This document shows positions 1 through 21,564 of a stretch of 46,228 nucleotides of DNA, one piece after another. Made by a program: the position numbers and the translations under genes. Source of the DNA: Klebsormidium nitens (Eukaryota > Plantae > Klebsormidiophyceae); NCBI GenBank assembly GCA_000708835.1, contig DF237604.1:1-46228 (forward strand), written 5' to 3'. Position 1 is the stretch's first letter. Each line of letters starts with the position of its first letter. The notes under the pieces were generated by a model. It was not told where the DNA came from and did not search any database. It worked only from the letters and a program-made list of their open reading frames with translations.

Positions 1-142
1 CACCTGGGTAGGTACCTTGGTACCGCCTCTTGTCTGGTAGGTACCACAGGATCATGCATGAGGGGGTTCCCCCTCGTTCCGCTGGATGTGCACATCTTTT
101 ACTACCTATGTTATTAAATTGAGGCTATATTAGATATACCTA

Positions 143-467
143 CCGTAGAGCGCCCAAAACCGGATCACGTACCATTGCTGGATCACCTCCGCAAACTAAA
201 CTGGACCTATCTTGATCCAGTCTCCTATTTAACAAATGTCCAAAACTGGATCAGCGCTTTTGTGCGGAAAACCGAGGTTTTTGACTCCAGAGCATGACCT
301 AAAGTTGGTCAAATCTGGATCCAAGTGTATCGGCAGATCTATTAGGGACGCCCTTGAAAAACCTGGATATGAGGAGAAAACCGCACTTCTAAATTGTAAT
401 TGCGTTAAAAAATACTGCAAATAAGCGGTGCGAAAAATAAGGTGATCCAGTAATGGGCGCTCTACGG
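143..467. mobile_element. Tc1/mariner-type MITE (325 bp, TA target duplication)
   Basis: CCGTAGAGCGCCCA at 143-156 and its exact reverse complement TGGGCGCTCTACGG at 454-467, each flanked by TA (141-142, 468-469). The perfect inverted repeat extends to 20 bp (137-156 / 454-473), with further subterminal GGATCAC/GTGATCC matches. No coding capacity. The superfamily is inferred from the TA flanks only. Confidence 0.7.
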
Positions 468-645
468 TAGGTAGTTTTAGCTTCAAATTCTGAAACCAGC
501 CTAGGTAGCTACGGAATTGGCGTTCAAGCCCCTTGCAGTACCTACAAACTTTTCTAAACGGAGCGGCTCATTCTTCGCAAACCGAGCATCTTCAGCAACA
601 TCATCTGCTGCAAGGGTCTGGAACGTGCATTCTGCTGCTCTAAAG

Positions 646-3600
646 ATGTATCATCGTTTGAAGGCCAGCCTTTTGGTCGTGTTCTTGACTGCTGCAGGAC
701 AGCGCGCATCGGGTCAAGCGGTGAGTGGGAGCATTGCAACTGTGATGGCACAAAAGGAGCAGATTGCGGTGCAAGGGGCACGCAGCGCAGCGATCAATGA
801 GGAGAATGCGTGCGGTAAGCCTTAGCACGCCCGACTGTGCATGTAATGTTGTCCATGTGTGTTGTTCGGTGGCATTCTTGGAGACCGTTAGTATAGATGC
901 GTGAAGACACATGATTAGGATTAGGTTACAGATGCGGTTATAGAGCAAACTCGTCATGGGTTCTGCACACGGCACCATGTTCAGAAAGCAGCACAGGGTT
1001 AGTGAACCTCTATATGAGGTTGGAAAGTTAGAGCAACATGCGTAGAGTCGGTGCACAGTGTTTGGCTGGTAAGTCCTGGGGTCTGTGCTGGCAATGCAGC
1101 GAAACCCCTAAGGTAGTTCCAGTGTGATTCCAGTGTGATGACCTCTTTTATCTGATTGCGGAAGGGCTAAATTGTGAAGAAGCTCGTAAGCTTAGATGCG
1201 CGATAGTTTGATACCAGAATCAAATCTTGGACGCTGACGAAGGTACTGACAAAACTCCAAAAGTAGGATGAAAACAGACCTTTTTTGACTCCGCCAGATC
1301 TTCTTTGCAGCGGCGATTGCGGCGTGCGGCATCAATCCCTCAGCCCTTGCTTGCACTCTCGCTCCTGTATCTTCCATGACAACCATCTGCCTCAACACTG
1401 GGCAAGGAGAACAGCCGGCGTGCAACAATGCCACTTGCAGCAACCTTCTGTTGTCATATGACCAATCTAATATCAGGTAATCTGGAGTTTTTTCAATTCA
1501 ATTCAGCATTCGAGTCTTTGAATCAGAATTGGTTTGAAGTTGCAGAGGGGTGCAACAAAGCTCTCCGAACTGGCCGAGAAGCTGAGCAAAGACACGCTCT
1601 GTTCGTTAGCACAATGTGTTGATAGCTCTGTGGCAGATGTGGACAAAAGTTCGAGTTTTGGACTTGGCGCTGTTTGAAAAGTGAGTTAGTCTGCAAGGCC
1701 GTCTAGAATTCAAACCGGCACCATCACTTTCTTGCCTATTCGTTTTTCCTGTCTACCAATTGTCACTGCCCTTTATCTGTTCCACTCTTTCGAAAAACTC
1801 AACTAATCTGCTCTGGCCCTTATTGGCGCCTGCTTTTGTGCAAAATCATGCAATATCTGTCTGTTGCCAGCCTACCGAAGCCTCCTGTAAGATTCTGCGA
1901 CCTGTCTATCAAGGACTAACCCCGTGCCATACCTGTTTCATCAACCAGCCTTCTGGATTGGTAATATTCCATCAAGGTATCAGAGGCCGTCCTGCCAATA
2001 TTTTGGGCTTGAGACCCTTTTTACGTGCACAAATGTGAGTGCTTTTCAAAATTTGGCTAGCCTACTGATCTTTGCAGACTACCCGACGGGGTTGGCGTCA
2101 AGAAAGCCCCAGCGCCAAACCCCGGCGCCGTGAACGCTCGACTGCGCACAAACTACCTGCAAAGAGACATCTGTGTCCAGAAGCAACTAGACACTGTGTA
2201 CAAGAGCGTCGTTCCTCAACCCTCAGGCAGCGACATCCCTGACTTTGCATATTATGGCGGCGCATCGGGAGTGTTCCGCATTTTCCCCGCGGTGGTAAGG
2301 CCCGTTCTACTTTCAACCGTCAAAGGGTGAATCAATCACCTGAAAACATGCGAATCGGTGCAAGATAGTCAATAACAGCAAACCTCATATTGGTTTAACG
2401 TTTGACTGGAGCTGACATGCTATAAGTCGGAGAACATGGCCAGCACTCGGAGCTCGAGATGGTCGATCTTCTGCAAAGTTTGACCAGCCCTGTCCTGGAA
2501 CTTTCCCTGAAAGCTTGAGTCAGGGAAGCCGACCGAAACAGGCGGAATGACTTGGTTAGTTGTTCGCGAAACGTCTAACTAGAGTTTGCGGCTGGTCAAG
2601 TTTTCCATGTCATCCCTTCTGTTTCAGTTCACGCTGACTGGCCCAAAATATAACAGGCGTCCCGAGATGCCCGTTGCTTAGCACGCAGGCCAGTTGAAAC
2701 ACAGAACGCTCGGCCGTCATGTTCGTGCTACTTGGAGAGCAAACCGGATCGGTACATGCGGCCTGTGATCTCTTTTGGCAGGCATACGATCAGTCCCCGC
2801 TTGCTGATGGCAGCGGAGTGCAGTGCTCTCCGTCGTACGATCCACGAAGACGACCTTGGTAAGCTCAAGGAGTGTCTATCTCTCTCTAGCTTATCTAGTC
2901 TTTCGGTATACATGAATACGATGCATTGTCCCAATTGTATTGCTCCCCACCAGTCGCGCTGACTGAAGAAGACCCATCTGATGTAGTTGTCACAGCAGAA
3001 GGCTCTTACTTTTGGATCCTTTCCATGTTATTGTGATCTGATCCTTTTCGAAACGCTGCAACTCGCAAGCTGCGAAGGTTCTTGATCCTGATCTGCCCAT
3101 GCCTTGTCTGACGTCACGTCCTCGATCTGCTCTCTCTTTTTTCAGATACTCACCAGAGTTTCGGCTGGTCAGGAGGGGCCTGCTACAAAGACCCTGGAGA
3201 GTTTGGCTAAACTTGATTTATTCAGCGGTGGGCTCGTCCATGTCTTTGTGGTCATCTATAGCGCGCCTAACCCCGTTTGCAAGACAGTACGGAATCATCA
3301 AACTGCCGGTCCGGATATTCTGTACAGCGAGAGCCTAGCGGACACTTCAAGCCGCAGGAGATCGCGCCTTGCGCAGGGCGCGGCCGCAAATGGAGCAACT
3401 CCTGAGCCCTTGCTATAAAGCAGAGCTTCAGCGTTACCTGACATGGCCCACCTGCGGATGTGTCATGCGCAGATTCTGGGACAAGAAATCACGAATCATT
3501 CTCAAATTAGACATTTGGTGGGGCCTAACGAGCGCTGACCCCTTCTTTTCAAGTCTTGGCGGATGACTGAAAGGCCGTTCTTCATCAACCAGGTACGCCG

Positions 3601-6600
3601 GTGCGGCCTCCCAAACGAAGCTGCTCGTTATCCTCTTGGACCTAGGACCCTTCCTCAACTCGCCGATCGCGTTCGGCACGGCCGCTGGCGTCACCAAGCT
3701 GGCTGCGATGAAGGCGGCGACCGCGGCGCTCTTTGAGTCTCTGAGGGCCTTCGACGTGGTCGCCGTGGTGACGGTCTCCAACTCGACCGGCGCGCAAGTG
3801 CTGACGACGGCATACGGACAATTTGTGAGTCGGCATTTGTCATAGGAGGAAACTGTGCTTCAAGAACGTGCTTCAAGTGCCTTTCTTAAGAGTCGAAGGG
3901 CCTTAGACGCGGTCGCCAAGGTTGCATTCTCCAACTCGACGGTGCGCAAGTGCTGACGACGGCATACGGACAATTTGTGAGTCAGCAACCGTTATAGGAA
4001 GAGACTGTGCTTCAAGAACTTGATCAAAGGTACTTCCACTCTTTCGAGTCTCTGAGGGCCTTTAACGCCGTCGCCGTGGTTGCAATCTCCAACTCGATCG
4101 GCGCGCAACTGCTGACGACAGCATTTGAACAGTCCTCGAGTCGTCTGCAAAACTATCCGCCGTTCTGGAACCCCCTGCACGAGTAGCGTTGCTCCGTAGC
4201 TGTATGCAAACTGGGAGAGTAACAAAGACCATTTGATTGCGGTACATACCAACACGGCTGAATACGGCGTAAGGACGGGTAGCAGTATCTGTGCTAAAGT
4301 TATCAACGTGATCAAAGGATCCTGCGCAGGCGTTCCGAATTCACTAGATTGAAAGTCCCGTAAGCTTATTTCCAGTTCTTTGTCTGCCGGACACCTCGAT
4401 CGCAATGAGAACACCTTTTAGTAGAGGCCATACAAAAACTGAGCCACGTTTGTCGGCTAGATACTCCCTGCTTTCTCGACTTTCCACTTCACTTCTGCAT
4501 CCCGCAGGTTGCGACTCCTATTGTCTGTTGTCTCGTACTTGAACAGGGACCCGTTCGGTGCAGCTCGTCCAAAAGCAGAATGCTCCTTTTAAGAGGACGA
4601 AAAGTTAGGGCCGTCAGGCATTCAGTACCAGGTATCTGGTTTTATTATGCGTCAAAATGGGGCTGGAGTGAATCATGATGATTGCCTTGAGAAGCGGCTT
4701 GCCAACCATCAGAAACCCCAAGCAGCATTTTGATCCCTCACCTCTCCCCCTTGCTCTCAAGGCCCCGGTAACGACGTACAACGTTCCCCGGGTTGACAAA
4801 GGGGACGAAGCGATCATGGCGCTGGACGCGGCGGTCCAGAACTTGACGGCGGCCACTTCCGGCACGACGGATCTGTTGAGCGGTCTCACTCGGGCACTCT
4901 CAGTCGCCGACTTCGAGCTCGACTTGGGGAAGACTATTTGCGAGCGGGTAAGCATATTCATCTCCGTTATTTTGCCGTCCCCTGTCTTGACTCAAGTGAC
5001 CTGTTCTCGATCCTTCAGGCTCTCCACTTCGTCCCTCATTTTCCTTTCAGCTTTGCTCAGAACCCCAGGCACGAAGGGGAAGCGACGTTTGCTTGGTTGG
5101 TGGTCTATATCACAACGTTTTTCACCATGTATTTCTCTGACTTTCGAAACAGTGCCTTTGTTTAGCTGTCCCAGCGGACGGACGTAGATACAAACCCCCC
5201 GCGGTGTGCTCTACTCCCCTAGTCTATAGATTCCAGGATCGACGGTCAGTTGGAGGACTTGTTGGGGTTCCATCCAGGCCGTTGAGACGAGGATTGTGGT
5301 TGAGAGAACTTTTGGGAGTCCGCTAAGGGTTGGCAGTCTAGATTTCCGTTCTGACGAGCTTCGAAAAGGACTTCGTTCTTCCTCAGACCGTGCAAAAAAG
5401 TTGTGGTTTTGGACAGAACCTGCATGGAGTCGAAGATGCGTTCGTCCTCGAGGACTGAATGGTTCTTAATCAAAGCCGCTTGCTTGATCAACAAAGACAG
5501 ATGTCTAGAGGAACACGAATGTCGCGGTTTGGTCCTATGCGAGAGCAATTGTCCAACTGGAGCCAACGTCCACTGCTGCTTCGTGAAGTGCTTGCAGAGC
5601 AAATAGAAAGATTAAGGAAACACAATGGTCCTGGTGCGAAGCTTGACACGAATGTCGGCTTTAAATAGTCGTCGCCACATGGGTAGGATGCCGCAATGGC
5701 ACCCATAAAGCTCGGCGACTTCGAGGCCCGCAGGGATCACCTACTGAGTCGCTCCAATCGTGAGCATGTGACAAGATCGGCGGGGAGCGTGAGTTTGGTG
5801 TTAATCTTCGCACATGCCGAGAAGCAACTTGAGAGAGACGCCCTCATTCGTTCAATAAGGGTTGCTCTCTTAGCTTTGTCTTTCTCTTCAGGTGGTTGTC
5901 GTTTTAACGGACGGTCTGAGTTTGGGTAACACGACAGCAGCGGGTTTGACGGCGGCGGTGCAAGCGCAACAGCTCCGAAGAAAAGAAACAAGCGTCCTGT
6001 TCTTCTCCGTCGGTGCGAGTAAGTCCCATCATTGAAGTTTTTGAGTTGTTGATCTCCGCTTCTTCCTGTGACGGATCACTGGGGAGTTGCAAAATCCAAA
6101 GTGCGCTGATCGAGACAATCTGCGAGGTCACGGTGTTGTCTATCTTGGATATTGGTAGGAGGTACTTCCAGAGAACCAACTGCCACAGACGCCTGAAGAA
6201 CGAGAAACCTTTTGGCCACGATCTCGTGGGTGCGAGCGCGCGCCCGTGATCAGATATCAAATTCGTTGGACTTCGCCGTTGAGTCGTAGACTTAAGCGCG
6301 CCGTTTGACAAACCCATCTGACAGCATTCTTGTCCGTCTTTGTCCGCGATATACTAAGCTTAAATTCCCTATCACGAAGAGACTATTTCAACACGCCCTT
6401 AAAGAGGGCGTTGGCGGATGCATCCGCATTCAGCGACCACTCAGCAGAGATTGATGGTTTTTGGTCGCCAAGATGGTACCACGTGGTCATTCGCTGATGG
6501 CGACTACTTACCTTTCGCTCCGCCCGCTACGTCGCTAATGACGTCACTGCGGATGTATCCGCCAACGCCCTCTTAAAAGAGACACAAATCCCCGCCGTAC

Positions 6601-9600
6601 ACGTGGGAGGAGCGCCCAGTCGGGGGCGCTCCTCCAGCAAAATGAGGGACGGTTAGTAAGTTAACCCTGAAACCGAACAGCCAAAAAGCGCTTGAAGACG
6701 ATGCAAACTGAAAGGCGTCCAAACCCTTGCCGCGCAGTCGGGAGGAGCGCCCAGTCCGACGCGCTGCTCCAGCAGGTGTCCTGCGCCACGGGCAGCGTGT
6801 GGGGCAAGCTGGACGACTTCGAAAACTCCCTGCTGTCGATGTATCCCTATTTCAACCTTCTGGCGGCGCGCAGCTTCTACAATCCGGGGGTCAGCAATCA
6901 AACCTACTTCACGCAGCGCTACACGAGCCCGTCACGACACGTGGACATCATCAGTCCGGCCAGACCAGGTGACCGACTCGGTTTGTTTGCTAACCTTGGT
7001 CAGCGCACTTAACCAGGTGACCGACCCGGAGTTGTGGGTTCTTATTGCAGAGGGTTCTTGTCTTACCGGGAGGTCAGGGCACTTGACCAGGCGGAAAGCG
7101 TCTTCGCCCGGTAGACACGCATCTGGACCGCGGATCATACACGCCTGGTCAACGTTGAAGTGTTTTCTATGGTTGTTGTGCAAGGGTTTGACCAGAGAAC
7201 GCCTGCGTTTGAGCATAGCCGGGTCGGCCGTTCACAGGAAGCAATCTTCCCTTTTTTTTCATTCCGCGACTCCGGACCGACCTGTCTGTTGACTTTCACT
7301 TTCTTCAGCATTTTAAATCACGGAGCTTGCAATGCCGCATCGACTCACACTACAACAATTCAGGTCTCCTCGCTTGTGTCCATGACGGCAGCGCTTCAGT
7401 CTGCGAGACTGTTCGGCGGCCTGGTTTACGTGGCCCTCTACCTAAAAACCTTGGTCAACTGTCTCGCAACCAAGCATGCTCTGTAAACGATTCTCGTTCT
7501 AGTATCCGCAGTTCTTATCAGCAACTGTGCCGAATTCGTCCGATCTAACGAAAGTCCTAGTCAGAGGTACTGGAGCGTCCGGTTTCTATTGAGCGAAAGT
7601 CCTGAGCACAAGAGACAAAAAAGGGGGTGTTCTTCAAAGTAAGTGCGTAATCGGAACTGGGGGTCTGTCATTGAAGAAAGCCTGAGCGGAGTCGGTGTTT
7701 GACTTCGTAACAACGCCGGTCAACGGCGAACAGTCTTTGTATTGGCGATAAGTACGACGGGGAGGGGAGCTTTGTGGCGTCCCAACTAGAACTGGGGGTT
7801 AAGGCGCATAATAGTAAGGGTGATATCAGTCGGTGCAGCCTTCGACGGGGCGGGGAACTTTGTTGGCGTCACAACTAGAACTGGGTGCTAATAACAACAA
7901 GGTCAACATAGATCCTTTGTCTCCACGCAGTTTACGACGGGGCGGGGAATCTGGTGGGCGTTGCTGGGGGGGACTTCTCTTTGCAGTCCACGCTGCTGCG
8001 GAACTTTTCGCTGGAGGAGGTCGATGCGGAACTCAACAGCAGAATCACCTTGGAGCGGTGCTCCAACGTTACACTCTCGGAATGCCGCCTCGAGGTGAGA
8101 TTTGCGTCTTGTAAATCCTGGGGTTGCACGAAATGTTTTCGATTGGAAGAACGCTTGGTTGGAGGGCTTTAAAAAAGAGGTGCTCCAACCTGACACGCTC
8201 GGAAAGCCGCTATGAGGTAAGATTTGGAAGTTTTTGAATTCAAGGTTGCAAAACACATTTTTCAGTTGGAAGCACGTTTGGTTGGAGGGCTTTTGAGAAA
8301 GGGGTGCTTTGACGTCACTCTTGAATGCCGCCTCGACGTGGAGATTTTCACACCTTACTTTCCAACAAAAGTAATCCAGGACGTTTGTATTCCTCAACCG
8401 GGCGTGGCTGTATTGACTCTTGCCGGATCCGGTGGATGGATATTCACGTGGAAACGCTAGTGGCTCTGGTTAAACTGGGCGCTTCCGTTTGGGGAGCGCT
8501 CAAACGGAGCGGTTTGCACGGAACGTTTTGGTGCCTCTAACCGTAAGCCTGGCGACTTTCAGTCCTTCTGAGACAGGCGGCTCTCATTCAGGGGTCCGAA
8601 GGATGTCGAAAGAGTGCAATTTTGGAGTCTGTGCGGCCTTACATTACCGAAGGCTTACTCAATGAGAAGCATCAAGAGGCTTTTTAGGTGCCCTGCTGAA
8701 CCAGAGCGAGAGTAAGGCGGACCTAGAGCAAACCTCAGAGCGGCACCCGATGCGAAGGTCTTAACTTAGTCTAGTCGCAGTTAGCAGCTTTCAAACAGTC
8801 GACCTTCTGCTGCATACCTTCGTAGAATGGCTACGCGGAAGCTTGCGCTGAATGTAACATACGTTTCCTCTCCCTTCCATAAAGTTCACAAACTTACGCC
8901 GTGACCAATATAACCTTTTGCCGAGGTGCAATTCTTAGCCTAAGTTATGCGTGTCTTCGCTTTCTGCGAGCCCTGTTGCAGCTGAGTCGGCTTTTAAGTT
9001 GCATTGCTGGCTTTAGCTTTACTGGAAGTTCCTTCGTATCGAAGGAACATGCAGCAAATACAAAAGTTCCCCCTGACTCGCTTTCGGGATGATCCGACCT
9101 ATATCACGACAGATCCCGTTGACGCAAGGCTCCCTTACGAGACAAAACTTGGAGGGTTAAGATTAGTAGATTGCGACCCGAATAGAAGTCTCACCACGAG
9201 GGTTTCGGAGCATTGTTTACCACGCCGTTGAAGCTCTGATCAACTAACCCATCTTCGTCCTCTGCAGACGATCCGCCAGTTCTCCGGGTACACTTGCGGC
9301 ACCAGCTCGGGTTGCCCCGCTATAGTTGTCTCGCCCTGCTCCATCGCCACCCCCCCCCAGACCAACAGCAGCGTCACCGTTCTGCAACCCCCCCAGAGCA
9401 GCCCGCTCTCGGACCTGCTGTGCTGCGGCACGTGCGCATTAAATGCCGCCCCACTGCCCGCGCCCACAGCCGCTTCTAGCAACAGCACATCTGGGGGCGG
9501 CTTATCTGGCGCGGCGGTCGCGGGGATCGTTGGGGGAAGCGTGGGGGGTTTGGTATTCATGCTTGCAGTGATCGCCGCATTGTGGTGTTGTTGCCGCCGG

Positions 9601-9762
9601 AAGACGCATCCTGACGGTAAAGTACGTCAGCAAGGGGCGCTGCGACCTACCGGGGCAAGTATGAATGGACCAGCGGCTGCTAGAGCTTCAGAACCTGCTC
9701 GGTTGTCCCGTCCGTTTGCGGAAGTGGACGAGGAGACGATGATGAACCCGAACCGTGATTAG
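646..9762 (+). CDS. Gene A: alpha2-delta/CACHD1-like Cache+VWA type I membrane protein, 10 exons, 687 aa
   Basis: Exons 646-814, 1311-1476, 2078-2294, 2782-2858, 3593-3824, 4762-4947, 5892-6018, 6738-6968, 7931-8094, 9268-9762. All introns are GT-AG, phases are compatible, and the total is 2064 nt. Motifs in alpha2-delta order: signal peptide (MYHRLKASLLVVFLTAAG), AYYGGASGVFRIFPA, YDPRRRPWYAGAASQTKLLVILLDLG, VWA (ALDAAVQNLTAATSGTTDLLSGLTRAL; VVVVLTDG; VLFFSVG; LLQQVSCATG), TYFTQRY...ISPARPVYDGAGNLVGVAGGDFSL, then TM helix (IVGGSVGGLVFMLAVIAALW) and CCCRRK. Confidence 0.88.
3906..4133 (+). repeat. Two degenerate tandem copies of the 3' end of gene A exon 5 inside intron 5
   Basis: CTCCAACTCGAC..GCGCAAGTGCTGACGACGGCATACGGACAATTTGTGAGTC recurs at about 3929-3983, donor site included, followed by a copy of the first intron bases (ACTGTGCTTCAAGAAC). 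A second, more diverged copy (GAGTCTCTGAGGGCCTT..CTCCAACTCGATCGGCGCGCAA..CTGACGAC) lies at about 4040-4130. Confidence 0.85.
6403..6573. mobile_element. PIF/Harbinger (Tourist)-like MITE, 171 bp
   Basis: 26-bp TIRs with one mismatch: AGAGGGCGTTGGCGGATGCATCCGCA (6403-6428) and TGCGGATGTATCCGCCAACGCCCTCT (6548-6573). Flanked by a TAA direct repeat (6400-6402, 6574-6576). Located in intron 7 of gene A. Confidence 0.8.
7753..8345 (+). repeat. Degenerate echoes of both ends of gene A exon 9
   Basis: The exon start TACGACGGGGCGGGGAATCTGGTGGGCGT is echoed at about 7753-7780 and 7841-7870. The exon end GGTGCTCCAACGTTACACTCTCGGAATGCCGCCTCGAGGTGAGA is echoed at about 8179-8222 and 8303-8340, with a period of about 123 bp that also repeats the intronic TTGGAAG..CG.TTGGTTGGAGGGCTTT. 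Confidence 0.8.
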
Positions 9763-10447
9763 GGCGCCGGTCTACCGCGCGGTTATTTGAGAGGTATACA
9801 ACGCTTGTGACGCAGAGAGGGAGGCCGTTAACGTATGAGATTGTGATTGGAAGCCGGTCCAACACAAGCGGATGATTAACCAGCCCTCACATAGGGATAA
9901 GCGAAGAAAACAAATTCAGATCGTACTCTCCAATTCGAGATTGTATCATAGTCGACCATCGTTGAAGAGGTCTCTGCGAGTCAACCAATCACTTAACCCT
10001 ATGAACGACTCAATGCTGTTTAACCGACAGTAGTTTTTTTGGTTATAGTTACAGTAGTTGCTCGGCTTTGCTTCCAAAGCCGCGATAGGGGAGTTTGTTG
10101 AAGACTGCGCAGGCCCACTGTTGACATCTGTAAGTAAGCCCGAGAGCTAAAGGAAAGACGTCCAGCGGAAGGAAATAGAGGAATAGTTGCAATGGAAGGG
10201 ACAGGTGGAAAACGCTGCGAGATTGCTGATCAAACGCACATTAATGGCCCTATAAGGCACCGCGACCGCATAGGCAAATGTGCTTGAGAGAGAGATCGAA
10301 CGTTGGTATGTTCATGCTCGTAGCGAAAGATCGTCGGTCGGTCTATAGATCCGAATAGGAAGAGCGATTGAACCGGAATTTTACGGTTCGTTCATCGTCA
10401 AATCTTTAGCGGCGTAGCCAACGAATGGTTGGGATGTGCCTAGATGA

Positions 10448-10775
10448 TCTGCCCAGCTCTATCCGACGCGAAACAGCAGCCAATCGTTTTGCACCATTTT
10501 CGCGCCCTGGAAAAGAAGGCGCGTGCAGCTGCATCATTGCAATGTCCAGGCCTTCTTGAAGCGCATGTCGTGCAAATTTTTCAACAGTGCTGCACATCGA
10601 AGGCTTATCTTCTGTATCTGCAAGGTTCTCAATCACTGCGCCCTTAAGGAGAGAACCACCATCCCTAGGTCGCGGCAAATATGCCGCCTTCGAATTAGTT
10701 GGGGTACATGGTCTGCATATAGAGTTTCTTTGCAAGACTAGCTAGCGCAGCGCCCCGGGCCCACCGCGCATCACC
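10448..10775 (-). pseudogene. Decayed copy of gene B exon 1 (four-helix-bundle domain)
   Basis: The reverse strand shares nucleotide blocks with 21088-21415: AGTCTTGCAAAGAA, GGTGGTTCTCTCCTT, CTTCAAGAAGGCCTGGACATT, TTGGCTGCTGTTTCG, ATAGAGCTGGGC. It translates in part as AVIENLADTED...ALQEGLDI...RLAAVSRRIELG. It has indels and no downstream exons. Confidence 0.85.
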
Positions 10776-11503
10776 TCGCGAATTGCAGCGTAATGAAAGA
10801 TGAGTTCGACGACGTCATGCACGTTGCTTTTATAAAATGTTCATTAAGCTGAGCCGTGAACCGTTTCATTCGCCTTATGCACCTAAAACTGGATATCCGA
10901 AGGCCTGACAGTTCTTTACATGTCATTGAAAAACACCTGCATATGTCTCCCGCGCCCATCCGAGCCTAGGCCCCAGCTGAGACACATGCTTATAGCTCCC
11001 CGCACCGTTTTCCTCACATGCGGCAATCAATGCTGTTGCTGAATTACTGGCATCTTCTTAATTCGTGTACGTCCTTATGCTCACGACCGTTTGTGCGTTA
11101 AACTGGATCGATCATTACTTCTGACATTATTTACGACCTGAGAACACTGATCCAATGTAGAGCGTTATCGTCTGGTCAAACCTTATTTGACGGTCTCCTT
11201 ATCCGACGCAAGCTGACTGTTACTTTTTTGACTCGCTACTTCAACCTTACCGTCAACGACGGTACACTCAATCTCATACGGCTAAAGAAGACATCCCTGG
11301 TTAGAACTACTCACGACATATCTACGGTCGCTTACCGCAGGAAACAAGCTTAAACTTGGTTGGATACGTTATCAACCACCGCCCGGCGGCCTGTGTTGGA
11401 ACCGCTCCAACAGATTCCATACTTGTAACCGTGACCTGTAACCCAATGTTGTCCCTGATAACTGAAGGAAGTCAGGATCCTTTTGAAGAGATCTGGAATT
11501 GTC

Positions 11504-14500
11504 TTATGTTGGTCGAGCGCCCTGGTGTCGACCTGGGTTCATCATATCCTCCTCGTCAACATCAATGACCGGACGCGGCCCCCAACTCGTTCCCAGGACT
11601 TCGGCAGCCGCTGCTCCGTTCTGAGTGTTCCCATCCGTTTGAAGCGGCACTTGCTGACGTGAGTTGCCGCCAGGTTGCGCCTTCCGGCAGCAGCAACAGT
11701 ACACTACAACGATCACTATAATGATAACTACTAAACCCCCGACGCTTCCCCCAACGATTGCTCCAGTAGGTGAGCCGCCCCCCCCCGTGCCGTTGCCGGG
11801 AGCGGCTGTGGGCGCGGGCGGCGGGGCGGCATTCAATGCGCAAGTGCCGCAGCATAGAAGGTCCGAGATCGGGCTGCTCTGGGGGGGCTGTAGAACGGCG
11901 ACGCTGCTGTTGGTCGAGGGGGGGGTGGCGATGGAGCAGGGAGAGACAACTAGAGCGGGGCACCCGGAGCCGGTGCCGCAGGTGTACCCCGAAAACTGGC
12001 GGATCGTCTGCAAGAACGAAGATGGGTTAGCGTTTTGGTTTGCAGCGGTGTGGGGGCCGAAGAACGCGGAGCGGTTGGGGAACTGCTTCTCTGGTCCAAA
12101 ACGACTGAGCCTCGGAAGCAGTACATCCAAAAATATACCCAAATTGTCAACGGCTCGGTTCCAATCAGCGCCTTCCACTTTCGCAGTAACTCCATCTGAG
12201 GGCAGGTGGTCATCGCAACGGCGAGACTAGATTGTTCTCCGAAGCTTTTCAGCAAGCGAACAAGAAGAAGTGGAAGGGGCCGGTGATCTGCACGGCCGGC
12301 AGGGTGCCCCCGCTCTGGAATCCCTTCAACCAATGTTGACCAGGAACAACAATGCCCTTTGTGCATTCATATCAGGGTACAAAGCTACGGAGAGTCTCGA
12401 CCCGGGGGTGCAAACCGAGAGCGTCAGGACTCAGAATGGAGCAACGTTCCAGAAACAGGCCCTAGATCCAAGCATGGCTACGAACGAATTGTCTTGCGTG
12501 TTCTGATATTCGGGAGGAATAGTCCAACGTCGAGGCGGCGCTCCGAAACCGTCACATTGGAACGGAAAGTTTCACTTCGGAGCGGCATTGCGAGAGCGCC
12601 ACGTTGGACAGATGCGCCAAAATCGTTTCTTAAGGAGCAAGATATAGTTCAATCCGCCCTGCGTGATGCCAAACTTAAGACGTCCTGCGTGATCGCAAAT
12701 ACCGTAGCCGATTTATTGAGGAAAGTCTCACTTCGAGGCGGCATTCCGAGAGCGATACGTTGGAGCACCGCTCCAGCGTGATCCTGCTGTTCAGCTCCGC
12801 ATCCACCTCCTCCAGCGTAAAGTTTCGAAGCAGCGTGGACTGCAGCGAAAAGTCCCCCGAGGCGACGCCCACCAAGTTCCCCGACCCGTCATACACTGCG
12901 CAACACGGGAAGGGTTCCGTCGTTCACCCCTTTTTTAAAGAATCGTTAACCCAGATTTTCATTTGTGACTCCCCCGCCCCGTCAGATACTGCGCAACACA
13001 GGGGAGGCTTCGTTCACCACGTTTCTGATCGTGATGTCAGAAAGCTTCCCCGCCCAGTCGGACACTGCGCAAACACAGGGAGGTTTTCTAAACCACGTAT
13101 TATTCAAAATTTAACCCACTTCCCGCTTGTGAGACCAACCCCGCTAAAGGTAACCAATTAATACTTGAATACCTTCGCCGGTTTTGGTCAGTCGTGTGAC
13201 TTGGCGACCCCCGTGTGCGCCCAATACTCTTCTACACTCGAAGAACCAAGCCTTATAGTACGCAACACAAAACCGAGAGACTCATCTGGCAGCTTGGATG
13301 GTTAACGTGAACGTCCGATTAAAAGCTTTGGGAAATGTCCCAGAGTACGTTGGAAACTTTTTCGGACGGACCCCATTGACAACACAGCCTGCTGAGGCTC
13401 CCGGCCCCGTCGATATAAACCTCTAGAATAGGTTTAGTAAGCTTAAGTTTTAGTACTGGGACGGGTAGGGTTAGCAAGGTGGTGAGGGTGGGTACGAGTG
13501 CGGAGCGGCGGATCATTTGGGTTAAGCTTTTTAGTGTTAGCCTCGTTCTTACTAAAACTTGAGCTTACTAAAACATTTCTAGAGAGGTTTCCCGTCAATT
13601 GCCGGGAGTGGACGTGCATGTCCTACGTTAAACTCTAGAAAATCAACGACTGACGGAAGCGCCGGTTACCTGGTCTGGCTGGACTGATGACGTCCACGCG
13701 TCGCGACGCGCTCGTGTAGCGCTGTGTGAAGTAGGTTAGGTTGCTGACACCCGGGTTGTAGAAGCTCCGCGCAGCCAAAAGGTTGAAATAGGGGTACATC
13801 GATAGCAGGGCGTTTTGAAAGTCGTCCAGCTTGCCCCACACGCTGCCCGTGGCGCACGAAACCTGCTGTAGCAGCGCGTCGGACTGAGCGCTCCTCCCAA
13901 CTGCATGGCAAGAAGTGCTTCGGCGGTCGAAGGGCGTGGCATATGAAGTCGGCTCAGAGTCGTTTCGTGATGCGGAGATGAAGTTGCAGAAAGCCAAGAT
14001 TCTGGGGACACTCTCATGGGCCACGAAGTGTAAGAAGGTGCCGCGCCACGACTTTTCAGATTAGCGCGCTTCAAATCACCTCTGAAAAGCAATCTACTCA
14101 GTGATGGAAGGCATTGCGGAATCGTTGGCAGCAACTGTCTGCAGGCGCTAGCATCGCAGGATTGTAGCTGAAAGGTTTCGTGCTTCAGGCAGCTGTGTGG
14201 ACACGAGTGTTGAACACTAGAGAGTCGTTTCTTAAACCAATTCCGATATTATGGTCACACCACGGATTAATTCTTCCAAGCGTTTCCGATCAGCGCACCA
14301 TTCCAGAACTCTGTCTCGGTCCGACACAGCTAAACCCTCCCTGGTGAACGGGACTCACTGGCGCCGACAGAGAAGAAGAGGACCGTCGTCTCCTTTCTTC
14401 GAAGCTGCTGCGCTTGCACCGCTGCCGTCAGACCCGCTGCTGTCGTGTTACCCAAGCTCAGGCCGTCCGTTAAGACAAGAACCACCTGAAAGGAAAAACA

Positions 14501-17500
14501 GCACTTAGAATGCGACATTGGTTCGTTTTAACGTGAGGGATACGCCCTCACGTGGCTTCTCAGGCTCCGTAAAGGCGAACAGCATCACAACTGCCGCAAA
14601 AATGACCGAGTGGTCACGGTTGGGGCGACCGACCAGGGGGCAGTGTGGGCTTCGGGTCGCCGAACGTCACGGGTCTCAGAAGCTTCCTTTTTACCACCAG
14701 GCAAGATCAATTAATGCCAGCAGCACTGCCTCGAACCAAGAGAGTCAAACAATGGTCGACCGAATGAGCAGATTGTGCAAGCACGGTGTAAGAGATGATG
14801 AACGCTGTCAAAGCTTTCTAGAAGGTGAGATTTGGACATACAAGATCAACGACTCGGCACACAGTGCCTCTGTTGAGCATCAATTTCAGAAATCCAATCC
14901 TCAAGCACAAGCGCATTTTTATTCCATCCAGAGCCAGCTTCGTTCCACGTATTGTCTTTACGAACTTCCGAATCTGTAAAGAGTTGCATATAGCTCTTGT
15001 CAGAAGGGACGGGTGGAGAACGCGGACGTTCCGCGGGCTCCCTGATACCTCGTTCCATTAGCTCTTCGTATCCCAACAAGAAAAGTCCTACCGAACATTG
15101 ATCCCCTTGACTCATAGCCCGGGGCAAAAGTGCGGAAAAGGCAGCCGGAAACCATCTCTTTTGTTCATCCGTTTAGGCTTGACTTTCTGGAGGAAGGTAA
15201 CCTTACGGTGCTCATCATGAGATTGGAGTCCAGCTCTACCTACAGACAGGCGTGATTCTTACCCGCTCGCAAATCGTCTTCCCCAAGTCGAGCTCAAAGT
15301 CGGCGACCGTGAGCGCTTGGGTGAGCCCGGTCAACAGATCCGTCGTGCCGGAAGTGGCCGCCGTCAGATTTTGAACCGCCGCATCCAGCGCCATGATGGC
15401 TTCGTCCCCTCTGTTTACCCGGGGAACGTTGAAAGTTGTAACCTGGGCCTGGAAGCAGGGGAACGGTGGGGTTCGACACCGGAACAGCACACCGAATTAT
15501 ATCAGACCCGGTTAGCGCGTCGTTCGGGCAACTTACGTCCGGACAACATGGATCCAATCTACTCGACCCTTCACAAAAACTGATCAAGTGCGATTCTTTT
15601 GAAAGCGCATTTTCCGCGACTTTTCGTACTAAGTTCTGGATGAGTCTGCTGCCTTGTAAGGAACTTCTTGCAAAGACGACAACTGTGGCAGCAAAGTGCT
15701 GCAGTAGCTGGAGAAAGGCTCTCTGGTGGGTCGAAGTACCAAAGACGACTTGAGGAGTCGACTCGGTTGTCCTTACGTGACGGGTTCACACAGGTTTCCG
15801 AAACCATAGAAACGGATCATGACGGCCCCGCGTTCTGCTCTGGCAAAAGGAGCAATTACTTTAATACGTGCTACGAACGTGTCAATCTCCCAGGCAACAA
15901 AGCATGAACGTCGCACAGCGGATGCAAGGCAAAGCGATAACCTGATGAAGCATCCACCTCGATTTATAGAGACAGGACGTGGCTCTGATTCCGCGCCGTC
16001 TCTTTCATGAAGGATTACTCCGCCGTTCGACTGTGTAAACAGCGGAGGGGCTTCACCAGACTTTGAACTTTGAACCCCATCACATGAGCACTCTCAACGA
16101 AGCACACCGAAAGCTGTTCGCAGAATTACTTTTTACGGAAACCCTTTCAAGTTTCGGGACGGACACCGCTACCCGTTGACTGGTGAAAGTATTGGCCATG
16201 TTGCCAAGCACCGCAGTCAATCTGCTCCCACCACGCACAGCTATGGGGCTACGAGATCCGCACAAGGGTTTGACCCGGGCGGAAAGCGCTGCGGACGACT
16301 CACAAACTGTCCGTATGCTGTCGTCAGCACCTGGGGCCCCGTCGAGTTGGAAACCGTCACCACGGCGACCACGTCAAAGGCTCTCAGAGACTCGAACAGC
16401 GCCGAGACGGTCGCCTGCATCGCAGCCAGCTTCGTGACGCCGGCAGCCGTGCCGAAGGCGACCGGCGAATTCACAAAGGGCCCCAGGTCCAGCAGAAGAA
16501 CGAGCAGCTTGGTCTGGGAGGCCGCACCAGCGAACCTGATTCGTGTAGGAAAGGAGGCGGGTTAGTCTGGTAACTGACGAGTGACTTAACAGTTGAGTGA
16601 CTTAAGAAAGGCGCCCGGGGGACGGGTGGGGTTAGCCTGGTGGTTAGGGTGGGTTCGGGTGCGGAGCAGGTGATTGTTGGGTTAGGTTTTTAGTTTGCTT
16701 GTTCGGAGTTCGTAAATTTGAAGTTACTCACCCTTAAGTCACTCCGGAGTTGCCAGTATCGGCGAGTTGACTCATCTGCCAAATCTGAGCCCGTACTGAA
16801 AGTTAGGGGTGTTCCAGTGAGCTTCATGCACCATCAGTTGCGACTTTCCGTTGCGATGGCAAACAGGAAAGAGTGGCGCATCTCCATTCACCGCAAGGAC
16901 TCACAAGTACTCAGCATTGTGGGGTCTTGGGCTTCACCATCTGCTTCCAAAACTTATAAGATAACAAGTTTTTCAAATGTTGGACAAAACTAGAAAGCAC
17001 AAGACGTCAGCGGCGTGTGGAAGTCGTTAAACTTTGAGCTCCGATTGATAGCGAAGTCCAAGAAGTCGCGCACTTAGGGCAGCGCACAGGCCAGGGCAGA
17101 GGTCGGCCTTTTAAAGCGGAGGAAAGCTTTATTTGATACAAAAGTCCTTGATGCAGTCCCAACGATTTGTACTACCCCACAAATCGAAACAGGCGAGCTA
17201 CATACGAAGTCTACAGCCACAGATACGCAGCCGACCCGGAAAAATCAGGAAAATCAACCAAGGCCAGTATTGTCGACAATTCCGCCGCTGATGATTTGGT
17301 TTCAGGTCTACAGAGAGAACCTAAAACCCAGGTTGTGGCTGGAACGTGACATCCAACAAGGCATGGGCGAATCACGTTCGGGAGACGTCGCCACTTTGCC
17401 CGCTTGCAGCTTCTTGACAGCGAACTTTATTTCAGTGACAGACCAAAGGGTTCATGAGACGCTCTTCACTTTGACCTCTCTCAGAATACTGGTCGAACTG

Positions 17501-19947
17501 GCTTATAACACGGCTTGATTGTGAGCTGAAGCAAGTGAGACACTCTTTTCAAGTATGAGATCCGGTTCGAACTCCGCAGAGCTACCAAGAAAGCGGAGAG
17601 TGTTTCAGTGATTTACCAAGGCCGTCTTCGTGGGTCGTAGCTCGGAGTGCACTGCACTCCACTGCCATCGGCAAGTGCGAACTGATCGTAAGCCTGCAAG
17701 ACAGATCACAGTCTTTATAAAAGTTCCACATATTGACTTTGCTCAATGGGCAGCACTCAGCGCTGTCATTACTATCAAGAGTTCTGTATCGCAACTGGCT
17801 ACGAGCTACAAGTTGCAGATATGAAGAAATTTGTCCGGATGGCTGGGATGAGTAAGAAATGATTCAGAAGCCAGCTGCCGGATTGCTTGACCAGCAACGT
17901 ATAAGTTCCCTTTCTGGAGAAACAGACAGCCGGATAACATCAACCGGATTGTCACTGACTGAATTTTACCAACAATCTCAAGACACGTTCCACCAGATTC
18001 CTGAAATTTTACCGACAATCTCAAGACACGTTCCACCAGATTCCTGAAACTTTTGACAACTTGAGCTCCATCACCGGCAATATCCTTCACACAGAAGTGT
18101 GTCAAAACTTGGCGGCTACAAACACAAGATTCAAGCTTGAGAATTGCTAATATGTCGCAAATTCGCAGGAACTGATTCGTCCTCTGACGGATCATACGGA
18201 ACGTGCCTTACCACAGCGGGGAAGATGCGCATCACTCCTGATGCGCTGCCATAAAAGGCAAAGTCCGGAAAGTCACTGGCCAAGGGTTGAGGAACGACGG
18301 TCTTGTATCTGTTGTCTAGTGGTTTCTGGACACAGATGTCTCTCTGCAGGTAATTGGTACGCAGGCGGGCGTTCACGGCGCCTGGATTCGGGGCAGGGGC
18401 TTTCTTCACACCAACCCCATTAGGTAACCTACAAAAGAATGTAGTGGGCTGGCCAGGTGTCAAAAGGAACCAAAATCTTAACGAAAGGTATTGGCCATTC
18501 CAAATTTTTGATTGTGAAACACACGGTCATCAAGGGCCCATGAATTTCCTTTAGGCAATGGCTGCCCCAGCCCGATTGAAAGGACTAGTGGCATCCAAGG
18601 AACAGCTTCACAGACAAGGATTAGGCCCGTTCCTTGGACAGCGGCAGCTTCTTGCACGAGCTTTCTACAGTTAATAGGAGAGGTAGAAGGACGGTCTTGA
18701 ACCAAAGGCAACAATGGACTTTCTGGTATTCTGTCATCTGAAGGCTTTTCATGCCAACAACTGTGCTCTTGTAGGCCTAGGTCCTGTGCACACTCTGAGA
18801 AAAGGACAACTGCCCCCACAGACTGCTTGTCCCAACACTATGCAGAAAATCAAAGTTGGGATAGATTTTGGTCTCACCTAATGTTGGATTGTTCGTAAGA
18901 AAACAAAAGGTTGCTGCATGTCGCATTGTTGCAGGCCGGTTGTGACCCTTGCCCAATGTTGAAGCAGGCGGTTGTCATGGAAGAAACAGGTGCGAGAGTG
19001 CAAGCAAGGGCTGAGACATTTGAACCGCATGCCGCGATTGCCGCTGCAGACAAGATTGGCAAAACTTGGTCAGATACAAAAGATCTATCATAAATCTAGC
19101 TATTTGATCTGCAAATGGCTTCTTGATTATGAGACGGAAGCCTAAAACTGTACCTTACCTTGTCCAGCTGTGATGTTGGATTCGTGGAGTTCTTCCAGGA
19201 AAATAACCCTACAACTGGCCCCCACGCCGTGTCTGGAATACTCTAAGCTTTAATATTTTTCGATGTGTCACAAGCAACTCAGCATTTTACCATGAACAGT
19301 GAACAAATATCCTTGAAAAGTAAGAATCAAGTTATCTTGTCTCTTAGAGCAATTGCTTCCGAGGATTCTATCGCAGCCAGCGCAGGACCAAAGGGTAGCA
19401 ATGACCTACTTTTTCGGATTGTAAAGTGTGTGTATTAGTGGGATTCAATAGGAACACACCTGGATGCTTGGTTGCAATGCACAAACAGAGCGGAAGCACA
19501 TGCTCGCCAACGTCAAATAGGTCTCATGGCTGGCATTGCTCTGAATAGTTGTCAAACCCCGCACACAGCATTATACCCTGTTCTCTTTCTGGCAATTTTA
19601 GAAATGGTGCCTCGAGCAGATCCCATGGGAGAACTGATGCTCAAGGCGCTTGCTCTCTAGCAGCAGCCTTCACAGCGATGAATACTCTGGATATGTTGGA
19701 TTTCCCACAAGAATACAAGAGTCTATACTTAGAATACCAAGGTGGCCAACTCTGGAGTGGATCAATGGGCAAACTTACCACACGCATTCTCCTCATTGAC
19801 AGCTGCGCTGATTGCCCCTTGCACCGCAATCTGCTCCTTCTGTGCCATCACATTTGCAATGCTGCTGCCCGATGCTTGACTCCGTGCGCCAGGCCATGCC
19901 GCACTCAGGAACACGACTACAAAGCTGGCTGTCAAAGTGAAGTGCAT
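11504..19947 (-). CDS. Gene A': paralogue of gene A, alpha2-delta/CACHD1-like Cache+VWA type I membrane protein, 10 exons, 690 aa
   Basis: Exons in transcript order: 19947-19779, 19043-18878, 18428-18212, 17693-17617, 16535-16304, 15448-15263, 14485-14359, 13900-13670, 12895-12732, 12007-11504. The first nine exon lengths equal those of gene A (169, 166, 217, 77, 232, 186, 127, 231, 164), and the total is 2073 nt with no internal stop. Same motifs: YDPRRRPWF, LLLDLGPF, VVLVLTDG, YFTQRYTS, GVASGDFSL, TM helix, CCCCRK. Confidence 0.88.
12530..13080 (-). repeat. Degenerate echoes of both ends of gene A' exon 9
   Basis: The acceptor plus exon start (forward strand CCCCG.CC.GTC...ACTGCGCAA.ACA.GG) recurs at 12971-13004 and 13045-13080. 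The exon end plus donor (forward TCACTTCG.GGCGGCATT.CGAGAGCG..ACGTTGGA) recurs at about 12566-12608 and, more weakly, at 12530-12565. Confidence 0.75.
13417..13590. mobile_element. Fold-back/MITE-like element with a G-rich telomere-like core (intron 8 of A')
   Basis: 35-bp inverted repeat with 4 mismatches: CTCTAGAATAGGTTTAGTAAGCTTAAGTTTTAGTA (13421-13455) and 13550-13584. It surrounds the core GGGACGGGTAGGGTTAGCAAGGTGGTGAGGGTGGGTACGAGTGCGGAGC. No target duplication was identified. Confidence 0.65.
16567..16756. mobile_element. Second fold-back element with the same G-rich core but different arms (intron 4 of A')
   Basis: GAGTGACTTAAG (16595-16606) pairs with CTTAAGTCACTC (16733-16744), and CTGGTAACT (16567-16575) pairs with AGTTGCCAG (16748-16756, 8/9). 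The core GGGACGGGTGGGGTTAGCCTGGTGGTTAGGGTGGGTTCGGGTGCGGAGC aligns closely with the 13.46-kb core. Confidence 0.6.
17962..18047. repeat. 43-bp tandem duplication (2 copies) in intron 3 of A'
   Basis: AATTTTACC(A/G)ACAATCTCAAGACACGTTCCACCAGATTCCTGA at 17962 and 18005, with one mismatch. Confidence 0.9.
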
Positions 19948-21087
19948 TTTAGGAGCAGCAACACAAAGTGGGACCACACAGAGATTGCGAAAGATGCTCG
20001 GGCCTGGAGGAAACAATATCTGACCGCCTTTAAGAATCGTTGCAGCTGGAAGGCGCTTGCCTTGGTGATTGTTCGCACCAAATCCAATTGAGCTAGGGTC
20101 AAGGCAAATGGATGTTTGGGTACCTACTTCTTTTCCAAGGCCGTAGCGTGAGCCATGGACCTAATCATGCAGGGGGAACCCCCAACTACCTAGGTAAACC
20201 TAGGCAACCCTCTGAAGCTTACGCCGATGGTAGGTACCTATTGTTACCTTCTACTGTAGGCTACCACAGTAGGTAGGTAGGTACCGGTACCGGTATGGCG
20301 GCGTAGGCCATGATGTCGTTACTAGGTAGGTACCGTACTCCAAACTTGGCCAAGCAGCATGTGACATGGTCCCGGTACCTACGGAGTCACGAGTGGCTTT
20401 GGCCGGACTGTACAGCGTACAACATCATAGGTACCGTACCGTACGGTGCAGAAAGTGCTGAACAAAGGTACCAGACTCCAGTGTCCAGACTCGTGCTCAA
20501 AAGCGCACGGACGGTGACGGAAGTTGGAACGTAGGTACACCGTACCGTTACGTAAGTCTGCAAGTCTCAGATCCGACGTCATCGATATCAAGCAAAAGCG
20601 ATTATCTGTGCATGGCCAGCCTAACCACATACCAAAACCCTATGGTGAACTGAGGTCAGTCACAGGCTAGTGACAAACCCTATGGCGTTCCGCCAAGGGT
20701 CCGCCTTGACCCACCGTAAACGGCCATACTAACCCCACCAAGATCAGTACAACCCGAAACTGGCCGAGGCTTCTTCGGGCACCGAGTCTCATCTACCGGG
20801 TAGTAAGCGCCCGGTTCAGAATACGGACACGACGTTGGAGTTTCGCCGTCGACAAGCGGTGCCAAGTTCCAACCTACAGTACCGCTGTCCGGACCGCCTA
20901 GCCGGAAGTTGAGACTTGCAAAGTCACGAACAGGATAGGTACTGTTTTGACAAGATGAAGGCTTGCCTTTCTTTCAAACCTGTCTATGGCAGGCGTTTCG
21001 AAGCTCACAGAGCTCTGCGTTGGTTCCTTCGCTGATTCAAAACCCAGCTCCACCATCTCGTGCAACATTCTGCCATAGAATCTGGAT

Positions 21088-21564
21088 ATGGCAGGTCATG
21101 CAGTGGGCGCCGCGCTCAGTCTTGCAAAGAAGCTCTATGCAGCTATTCAGACTGTACCCCAGCTTCGAAGGCAGTGTGCCAACCTTGAGGAGGTGGTTCT
21201 CTCCTTGGAGGCGGTCATTGAGGACCTTGCCAATGCAGAAGATGATCCCAATGTGCAGGACCTCTTAGGAAAGTTGCAGGATGCACTTCAAGAAGGCCTG
21301 GACATTGTGCAGCAGGGGGAAGGGAAGGGGCTCCACGATTGGGCACGCCTTGTTTTCCAGGGAGAAAATGTGGCAAGGAAATTGGCTGCTGTTTCGGGCC
21401 GCATAGAGCTGGGCCTAACTAGCCTGCTTCCTGGGATGAAGGGTCAAATGGGGAAGATTAATAAGGATGTGGCTGAAGTAAATGCACAACTCAGGGAGTT
21501 GAAGGAGCAACTGAACAGGATTGCTGAGGCTATTGACGAGAACAGGGCTGAGATATCTGATCGG
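21088..21564 (+). other. N-terminal four-helix-bundle domain (MLKL-NTD/RPW8/MCAfunc/UND-like) of gene B
   Basis: MAGHAVGAALSLAKKLYAAIQTVPQLRRQCANLEEVVLSLEAVIEDL...LQDALQEGLDIVQQ...ARLVFQGENVARKLAAVSGRIELGL matches the helix pattern of these domains (QC..L motif; L..AL.EG..IV). Assigned by eye. Confidence 0.65.

Follow-up and report, generated by a model that had tools for sequence, protein, structure and literature searches.

Amino-acid-binding domains of the dCache_1 type (dCache_1AA) carry the five-residue AA_motif, which corresponds to Y121/R126/W128/Y144/D173 in PctA numbering (PMC8915833). Versions of dCache_1AA that are split by a VWA domain were previously reported in Euglenozoa, Heterolobosea, SAR, Haptista, Choanoflagellida, Archaeplastida and Metazoa (Gumerov et al. 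2022, PNAS, PMC8915833). Forms with a single dCache_1 and kinase-fused forms from Streptophyta were included in that study, and the family was undetected in any angiosperm genome. In alpha2delta-1, residues Y238, R243, W245, Y452 and D493 were seen by cryo-electron microscopy to contact gabapentin and L-Leu (bioRxiv 10.1101/2022.12.05.519047); the column of its A217 is occupied by Phe in alpha2delta-3 and alpha2delta-4, where it blocks bulky ligands (PMC9901441). CACHD1 possesses two dCache_1 domains, the second of which has an intact AA_motif (PMC8915833). Here, two genes (A and B) located at 646-19947 of Klebsormidium nitens contig DF237604.1 (assembly GCA_000708835.1) are compared with these systems. 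The whole stretch that was analysed, 46,228 nucleotides in length, is referred to as the window. K. nitens is a streptophyte alga of class Klebsormidiophyceae, in agreement with a preliminary description of this DNA, made from its letters alone, which had placed it in an alga-like organism. The same description took the sensing role of this family to be uncharacterised outside animals and bacteria. This was overstated, since the role is already a bioinformatic prediction for almost all eukaryotic supergroups, with Archaeplastida and Streptophyta among those named (PMC8915833).

Our results make it rather likely that A and B are inverted tail-to-tail duplicates representing a short, single-Cache form of the eukaryotic VWA-split dCache_1AA family, which would bind an amino-acid-like ligand and have an alpha2delta-like output. 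They are uncharacterised members of the kind predicted across eukaryotes in 2022 (PMC8915833).

The relationship with alpha2delta was observed first of all at the protein level. When the gene A product was compared by phmmer with all PDB sequences, alpha2delta-1 accounted for each of the top 13 matches (E 9e-5, residues 169-470 against 208-469), with PctB (E 0.003) and PctA (0.01) next in rank, and a four-row family profile brought alpha2delta-1 up to E 2.6e-6. YDPRRRPWY was aligned on YDVRRRPWY of alpha2delta-1, i.e. on Y238, R243 and W245, and FTQRYTS on WTNVYLD, i.e. on Y452, with Ser facing D454. Before the VWA domain, only the last ~40 residues aligned to alpha2delta-1. The part following the VWA domain, taken alone, matched PctB (E 0.003), with GVAGGDFSLQ lying on GVVGGDLSLQ (GVVGGDLSLK/Q in PctA/PctB); in the PctA alignment Y453 fell on Y144, S455 on D146 and D483 on D173, with counterparts in PctB. 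Pfam VWA was matched at 23.4 and 23.2 bits in the two proteins (cut-off 23.8) over residues 246-420, between W210 and Y453. Pfam dCache_1 (PF02743) reached 19-22 bits against a cut-off of 45, residues 442-488 giving a partial match to profile positions ~108-154 of 240 only. This shortfall lowers formal membership rather than homology, because a VWA split is expected to depress the score. Judged from these alignments, both proteins are homologous to the VWA-split first dCache_1 module of alpha2delta. The likeness to alpha2delta and CACHD1 initially put forward thus stands for this module, with VWA and dCache_1 matches under the cut-offs. It fails for the remainder, since there is one Cache unit, no Pfam match to VWA_N, to VGCC_alpha2 (PF08473) or to a second dCache_1 in either protein, and no metal ion-dependent adhesion site (MIDAS).

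Other searches were less informative. The nearest language-model neighbours were diatom VWA clusters (0.98) and chordate VWA_N/VWA alpha2delta clusters (0.94). Exon-by-exon searches of Pfam and PDB gave a weak VWA_2 match on exon 5 (E 0.027) and nothing else, the exons being too short. Word searches with the whole protein and with residues 110-530 and 160-270 (proteins of 378-1202 aa, E <= 10) returned the K. nitens paralogues only and are silent on longer or fused relatives. Of the 138 stretches to which family patterns pointed in a metagenome scan, not one was confirmed. The library search with exon 8 also gave two metagenomic fragments (P0002 and P0006) and four repeat proteins, the latter being dropped as spurious.

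The five motif residues are found in both proteins, arranged as Y203-x4-R208-x-W210-(Y/F)211, the VWA insert, Y453 and D483. Six-frame translation located YDPRRRPW at 2836-2859 (+) and 17616-17639 (-), FTQRY at 6908-6922 (+) and 13716-13730 (-), GVAGGD at 7957-7974 (+) and GVASGD at 12852-12869 (-). The codon positions proposed earlier for the two Tyr (2836 and 6920) and the Asp (7972) proved exact. Likewise, the spliced models displayed the predicted Y-D-P-R-R-R-P-W-(Y/F), with Tyr in A and Phe in B, the Asp lies 30 residues past the Tyr of FTQRY, and the phmmer alignment together with the Pfam VWA match confirmed that the motif is split by a VWA domain at the alpha2delta position. Y453 and D483 have 29 residues between them in both paralogues (Y-x29-D), inside the published range of 27-34. 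The acid position of Y-x-D is a Ser (RYTS) in both genes, as previously noticed. A bare Y-x4-R-x-W is not rare (2 in six frames against 3.5 expected in shuffles); the significance of the motif comes from its context, namely the ~300-residue alignment to alpha2delta-1 with coinciding motif columns, the alignment to PctA and PctB, and conservation in four homologous genes. Ligand binding by A and B is plausible.

The two further homologous genes were found, with the same exon layout, on two metagenome contigs from JGI (3300060285 and 3300060284), here called L001 and L002. The former (~60% identity) displays YDPRRRPW, YFTKRYRS and GVAAGD, and the latter (~35% identity) FEPRIRPWY, VYTD and GVAAGD. 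R208, W210, Y453 and D483 were invariant in all four genes, Y203 being replaced by Phe in one; at the Y-x-D position three genes have Ser, and L002 has Asp. More variation was observed in the column that sets pocket size, which is occupied by Phe in A, Met in B, Thr in L001 and Met in L002.

A and B encode predicted type I membrane proteins. Read from the sequence, their order is a signal peptide, an N-terminal helix, a six-Cys segment, the first half of a distal Cache module ending at Y203-x4-R208-x-W210 and the VWA domain. The second half of the distal module follows, with Y453 and D483, then a Cys/Pro/Ser-rich stalk, one transmembrane (TM) helix, CCC and a 55-residue tail that ends in a conserved acidic D-E-E-x-M-M-N-P. 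The insertion point of the VWA domain (~residues 215-420, exons 5-8) is exactly that of alpha2delta. Its MIDAS is not intact in any of the four family genes, reading D-L-G-P-F in A and B, D-L-G-P-Y in L001 and D-I-G-P-S in L002. Past D483 there are ~60 ordered residues, then the stalk, and the ectodomain ends ~120 residues after D483. The Cache unit is probably a single distal module lacking the membrane-proximal one, because positions 155-240 of the dCache_1 profile were unmatched. The stretch A-F-S-G-Y...A-I-V-V-S-P following D483 resembles F-S-G-M-G-Y...I-L-V-H-P, which we take to be the terminal hairpin of PctA.

The VWA boundaries showed a particular feature. The domain is immediately followed by S-F-Y-N-P-G-V-S (437-444, ~6872-6895), which aligns to P-W-Y-N-A-A-T-S of PctB, the segment placed right after R-x-W in bacteria, and both flanks (RPWYAGAAS before, SFYNPGVS after) resemble this one bacterial stretch. 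Such a doubled likeness could be an insertion footprint, or chance.

At the DNA level, the window is eukaryotic, rich in introns and of ~52% GC. The two genes are convergent, tail to tail, with 10 exons each and a gap of 1.7 kb. Comparison of 1-10600 on the plus strand with the reverse complement of 10000-21000 revealed ten collinear blocks that are 77-90% identical in nucleotides, with unalignable sequence between them. All conserved blocks were flanked by AG...GT, every modelled intron in both genes was GT-AG, and the spliced models gave uninterrupted open reading frames (ORFs) of 687 aa (A) and 690 aa (B). Both were letter-identical to database proteins, the first of which (P0001) came from a search of a representative protein library with exon 8 and the second (P0008) from a word search; public records name them 'hypothetical protein' or 'VWFA domain-containing protein'.

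Contigs from four public runs mapped on 2100-8094. The gene A joints 2294|2782, 2858|3593, 3824|4762, 4947|5892, 6018|6738 and 6968|7931, i.e. exactly introns 3-8, were present in them and were seen in 2-4 runs from 3 studies. It follows that the runs represent RNA and that gene A is transcribed, with splicing as in the model. A contig of run X20 on exon 8 carried four differences, and its loose 5' end was identical to the last bases of exon 7 of gene B (14386-14359) joined to the start of exon 8 of the same gene, so that gene B is also expressed and spliced, as judged from one junction. The apparent variants 6778 G>T and 6781 C>G of run X20 do not reflect polymorphism in gene A, because they stem from a gene B transcript contig that cross-maps at 90% likeness. 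The splicing assumed in the preliminary description was thus verified for introns 3-8 of A and the exon 7/8 junction of B; exons 1-2 and the exon 9/10 junction of gene A rest on paralogue conservation, reading frame and identity to the database protein.

Intron 4 of gene A was partly retained: an unspliced contig (2832-3621) had a depth of 17.7-37.6, against 50-66 for the spliced contig and 0-6 for the other introns. In the retained form a TAA occurs right after Trp210, which would yield a secreted N-terminal fragment of 210 residues ending at R-x-W. In intron 5 of gene A, the 3' half of exon 5 recurs twice as a decayed, partial copy (3897-3983 and 4043-4161). One copy reads FESLRAFNAVAVVAISNSIGAQLLTTAF and the other is frame-shifted; neither was found in gene B or in spliced contigs.

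The ratio of nonsynonymous to synonymous substitution rates (dN/dS) between A and B was 0.14 (Nei-Gojobori, dS 0.54), and 0.09 in the ectodomain core (residues 105-550), with dS ranging from 0.54 to 0.59. A dN/dS of 0.14 at a dS of ~0.55 shows that the pair was duplicated long ago and is kept under purifying selection.

How A and B might function can be outlined from their relatives. Their products would be type I glycoproteins of the plasma membrane or secretory pathway, belonging to the superfamily of animal alpha2delta and CACHD1. The five motif residues would form one pocket for a free alpha-amino-acid-like ligand, as in PctA and alpha2delta-1, the ligand carboxylate facing R208, W210 and Y203 and its amino group Y453 and D483. 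The Ser at Y-x-D and the Phe (A) or Met (B) at the pocket-size position may tune the pocket toward small ligands, differently in the two paralogues. Ligand occupancy would then alter how the protein is trafficked or how it associates with a partner in the membrane, the alpha2delta mode being the most likely one, and the palmitoylatable CCC and the acidic D-E-E-x-M-M tail are candidate sorting signals. A piston of the bacterial type or a metal-mediated docking to Cav is unlikely, since the proteins lack an N-terminal TM helix, a detectable proximal module, a MIDAS and a cytoplasmic signalling domain.

Several observations weigh against the reading of A and B as amino-acid-binding members of this family. 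Every Pfam match was under its curated cut-off, with positions 1-107 and 155-240 of the dCache_1 profile unmatched, and VWA_N (PF08399) was absent even at E 10, whether the whole protein, residues 24-215 or residues 100-215 were searched. AlphaFold2 models had a predicted local distance difference test score (pLDDT) of 29 with 4 alignment rows and of 40 with 13 rows (predicted template modelling score 0.33), the Cache part remaining below 50; the 13-row alignment was cleaned by hand and included exon translations from L001 and L002. Foldseek, run on the model with pLDDT 40, returned generic VWA folds (ITIH1, Ku, TFIIH p44) and alpha2delta-1, the latter at the highest sequence identity, which speaks for the VWA domain only. 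Among the predicted pocket positions, Ser replaces the Y-x-D acid (D146 of PctA, D454 of alpha2delta-1) in A, B and L001, A has Leu instead of the accessory W225 of alpha2delta-1, and Phe takes the place of Y203 in L002. The mechanism through trafficking or a partner, finally, is purely inferred, by analogy.

Some of these observations would fit a cell-surface adhesion or wall-associated VWA protein, in which the Cache remnant does no more than support the VWA domain and the motif survives as a ligand-free relic. The dCache_1 profile match covers only ~45 residues, there is no proximal module, UniRef calls the protein simply 'VWFA domain-containing protein', the nearest language-model clusters contain VWA families only, and a bare Y-x4-R-x-W is common by chance. 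A relic, however, is difficult to reconcile with the retention of all five motif positions in both paralogues at a dS of ~0.55 under strong purifying selection, or with four of the five remaining invariant down to ~35% identity. The VWA domain, moreover, is devoid of the metal site that VWA adhesion usually needs. We regard this reading as unlikely.

Quite unlikely, too, is a small-molecule sensor for a ligand other than an alpha-amino acid, such as an organic acid, a polyamine or a compound resembling gamma-aminobutyric acid, made possible by the Asp-to-Ser change and the bulky Phe or Met. dCache_1 domains are known to bind many ligand classes (PMC8915833), S455 does replace D146 of PctA and D454 of alpha2delta-1, and F178 of A (Met in B) occupies the place where Phe blocks bulky ligands in alpha2delta-3 and alpha2delta-4. 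Yet, the Asp of Y-x-D lies outside the five AA_motif residues, all of which are present, and L002 keeps Y-T-D within the same family.

That the best-scoring solved relatives were all alpha2delta-1 could also point to a true auxiliary subunit of the alpha2delta type, which would chaperone or traffic an algal four-domain voltage-gated cation channel and whose pocket would be constitutively filled by a structural cofactor. alpha2delta contacts the Cav channel through its MIDAS, a site destroyed in all four family members, and the half comprising the second dCache_1 and VGCC_alpha2 is absent. These differences make a channel subunit distinctly improbable, even if the alpha2delta-1 pocket holds endogenous L-Leu and added amino acids had no trafficking effect of their own (PMC9901441; bioRxiv 10.1101/2022.12.05.519047).

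In both metagenomic relatives, the Cache-VWA-TM gene is followed downstream, on its own strand, by an ORF with a TIR domain (L001 8495-9127, L002 16210-16719; Pfam TIR_2 E 9e-13 and 2e-14), the two being 30% identical to one another. The TIR exon of L001 must be spliced to an upstream exon because it has no in-frame ATG after the preceding stop. This arrangement could be a fusion or a conserved linkage; a TIR domain is not present in the K. nitens window. It would be a long shot to see here a distinct minimal receptor class of streptophyte algae, with a single-module Cache pocket, a VWA domain without MIDAS and no proximal module, acting in related algae as TIR-coupled amino-acid receptors of Toll-like topology, the K. 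nitens pair being TIR-less decoys or co-receptors. A pseudogene or annotation artefact was ruled out by the intact ORFs of both genes, spliced mRNA and the dN/dS of 0.14.

The coordinates of both genes and of their main features are shown in the table. Elsewhere in the window, a 182-aa ORF at 21088-21633 (+), divergent from gene B, gave weak sub-threshold matches (E 1e-4 to 4e-4) to Rx_N, MLKL_N and RPW8, which are N-terminal four-helix-bundle cell-death domains; no Pfam family was found in the adjoining ORFs. A CxC4 cysteine cluster associated with KDZ transposases was matched below cut-off (E 2.6e-4) at 40049-41872 (+), and DUF5906 above cut-off (29.8 bits) at 44495-45592 (-).

Table. Genes A and B of the Klebsormidium nitens window and position of their motif codons, membrane-related segments and MIDAS remnant.
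Feature	Position	Strand	Remarks
Gene A	646-9762	+	KFL_006550020, protein P0001, 687 aa; paralogue blocks, GT-AG introns, RNA contigs
Gene A exons 1-5	646-814, 1311-1476, 2078-2294, 2782-2858, 3593-3824	+	
Gene A exons 6-10	4762-4947, 5892-6018, 6738-6968, 7931-8094, 9268-9762	+	stop 9760-9762
Gene A predicted signal peptide (residues 1 to ~23)	646-714	+	basic n-region, hydrophobic core, A-S-G; read by eye
Gene A F178	2274-2276	+	pocket-size column; aligns to A217 of alpha2delta-1 and F221 of alpha2delta-3
Gene A motif, N-terminal half	2836-2858	+	Y203 2836-2838, R208 2851-2853; aligns to Y238/R243/W245/Y246 of alpha2delta-1
Gene A W210	2857-2858 plus 3593	+	codon split TG/G by intron 4; Y211 3594-3596
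Gene A intron 4	2859-3592	+	splits Trp210 codon; partly retained in transcripts
Gene A degenerate MIDAS	3639-3653	+	D226-L-G-P-F in place of D-x-S-x-S
Gene A Y453 and S455	6920-6922 and 6926-6928	+	Y144/D146 of PctA, Y452/D454 of alpha2delta-1; columns counted in printed alignments
Gene A D483	7972-7974	+	within GVAGGD; D173 of PctA
Gene A TM helix (~605-629) and CCC (630-632)	9511-9594	+	read by eye; weak TM-type Pfam matches at 610-635
Gene B	19947-11504	-	KFL_006550030, protein P0008, 690 aa; open ORF, all introns GT-AG
Gene B exons 1-5	19947-19779, 19043-18878, 18428-18212, 17693-17617, 16535-16304	-	
Gene B exons 6-10	15448-15263, 14485-14359, 13900-13670, 12895-12732, 12007-11504	-	
Gene B motif, N-terminal half (Y203...W210)	17617-17639	-	F211 is the first full codon of exon 5, 16534-16532
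Gene B Y453 and S455	13718-13716 and 13712-13710	-	
Gene B D483	12852-12854	-	within GVASGD

The conceptual advance provided by this pair is limited, since a 2022 study had already described the family and predicted its function in eukaryotes at large. New points may be, as far as sequences tell, the lost proximal module, a MIDAS lost throughout the family, the difference in pocket size between paralogues and the TIR linkage in relatives. If the pocket does bind amino acids, A and B would give the plant lineage its first amino-acid receptors of this family that are open to experiment, and in an early-diverging streptophyte alga near the origin of land plants. As small, single-unit versions of the gabapentin-binding module, they would be convenient for biochemistry and crystallography of the VWA-split pocket, and their difference at the residue that sets pocket size (alpha2delta-1/2 versus alpha2delta-3/4) would offer a natural specificity pair.

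Compared with known systems, A and B come close to the forms of Gumerov et al. that combine a single dCache_1AA with a VWA domain: one Cache unit is split by VWA between Y-x4-R-x-W(Y) and Y...D, and all five motif residues occur in a non-vertebrate eukaryote. They differ from the Streptophyta example, which is fused to a Ser/Thr kinase, A and B having only the 55-aa tail, and from dCache_1AA in general by the fact that no proximal module was detectable, so that their unit may comprise just one module instead of the two of a double Cache. PctA, PctB and Tlp3 are similar in the second half of the pocket, where residues 437-491 align to 119-172 of PctB and 131-171 of PctA with near-equal spacing; the 29 residues from Tyr to Asp are bacterial-like (28 in PctA), against ~40 in alpha2delta-1. 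In contrast to A and B, these bacterial proteins contain no VWA domain and possess two flanking TM helices, a proximal module and a cytoplasmic signalling domain.

CACHD1, from the same superfamily, likewise has type I topology, with one TM helix and a tail in the cytoplasm, and its MIDAS is also imperfect. The algal pair is set apart from it, by description, in having only the VWA-split first unit, which carries the motif. alpha2delta-1 (PDB 7MIX, 8FD7, 6JP5) is longer, the 687 aa of the algal protein representing ~60% of its ~1100 aa. The algal proteins have no second dCache_1, no VGCC_alpha2, no delta peptide, no VWA_N Pfam match and no DxSxS MIDAS, display a TM helix and a tail, and do not conserve W225 and D454. 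Nevertheless, alpha2delta-1 remains their best sequence match, with near-identical YDPRRRPWY and YDVRRRPWY segments and the same point of VWA insertion.

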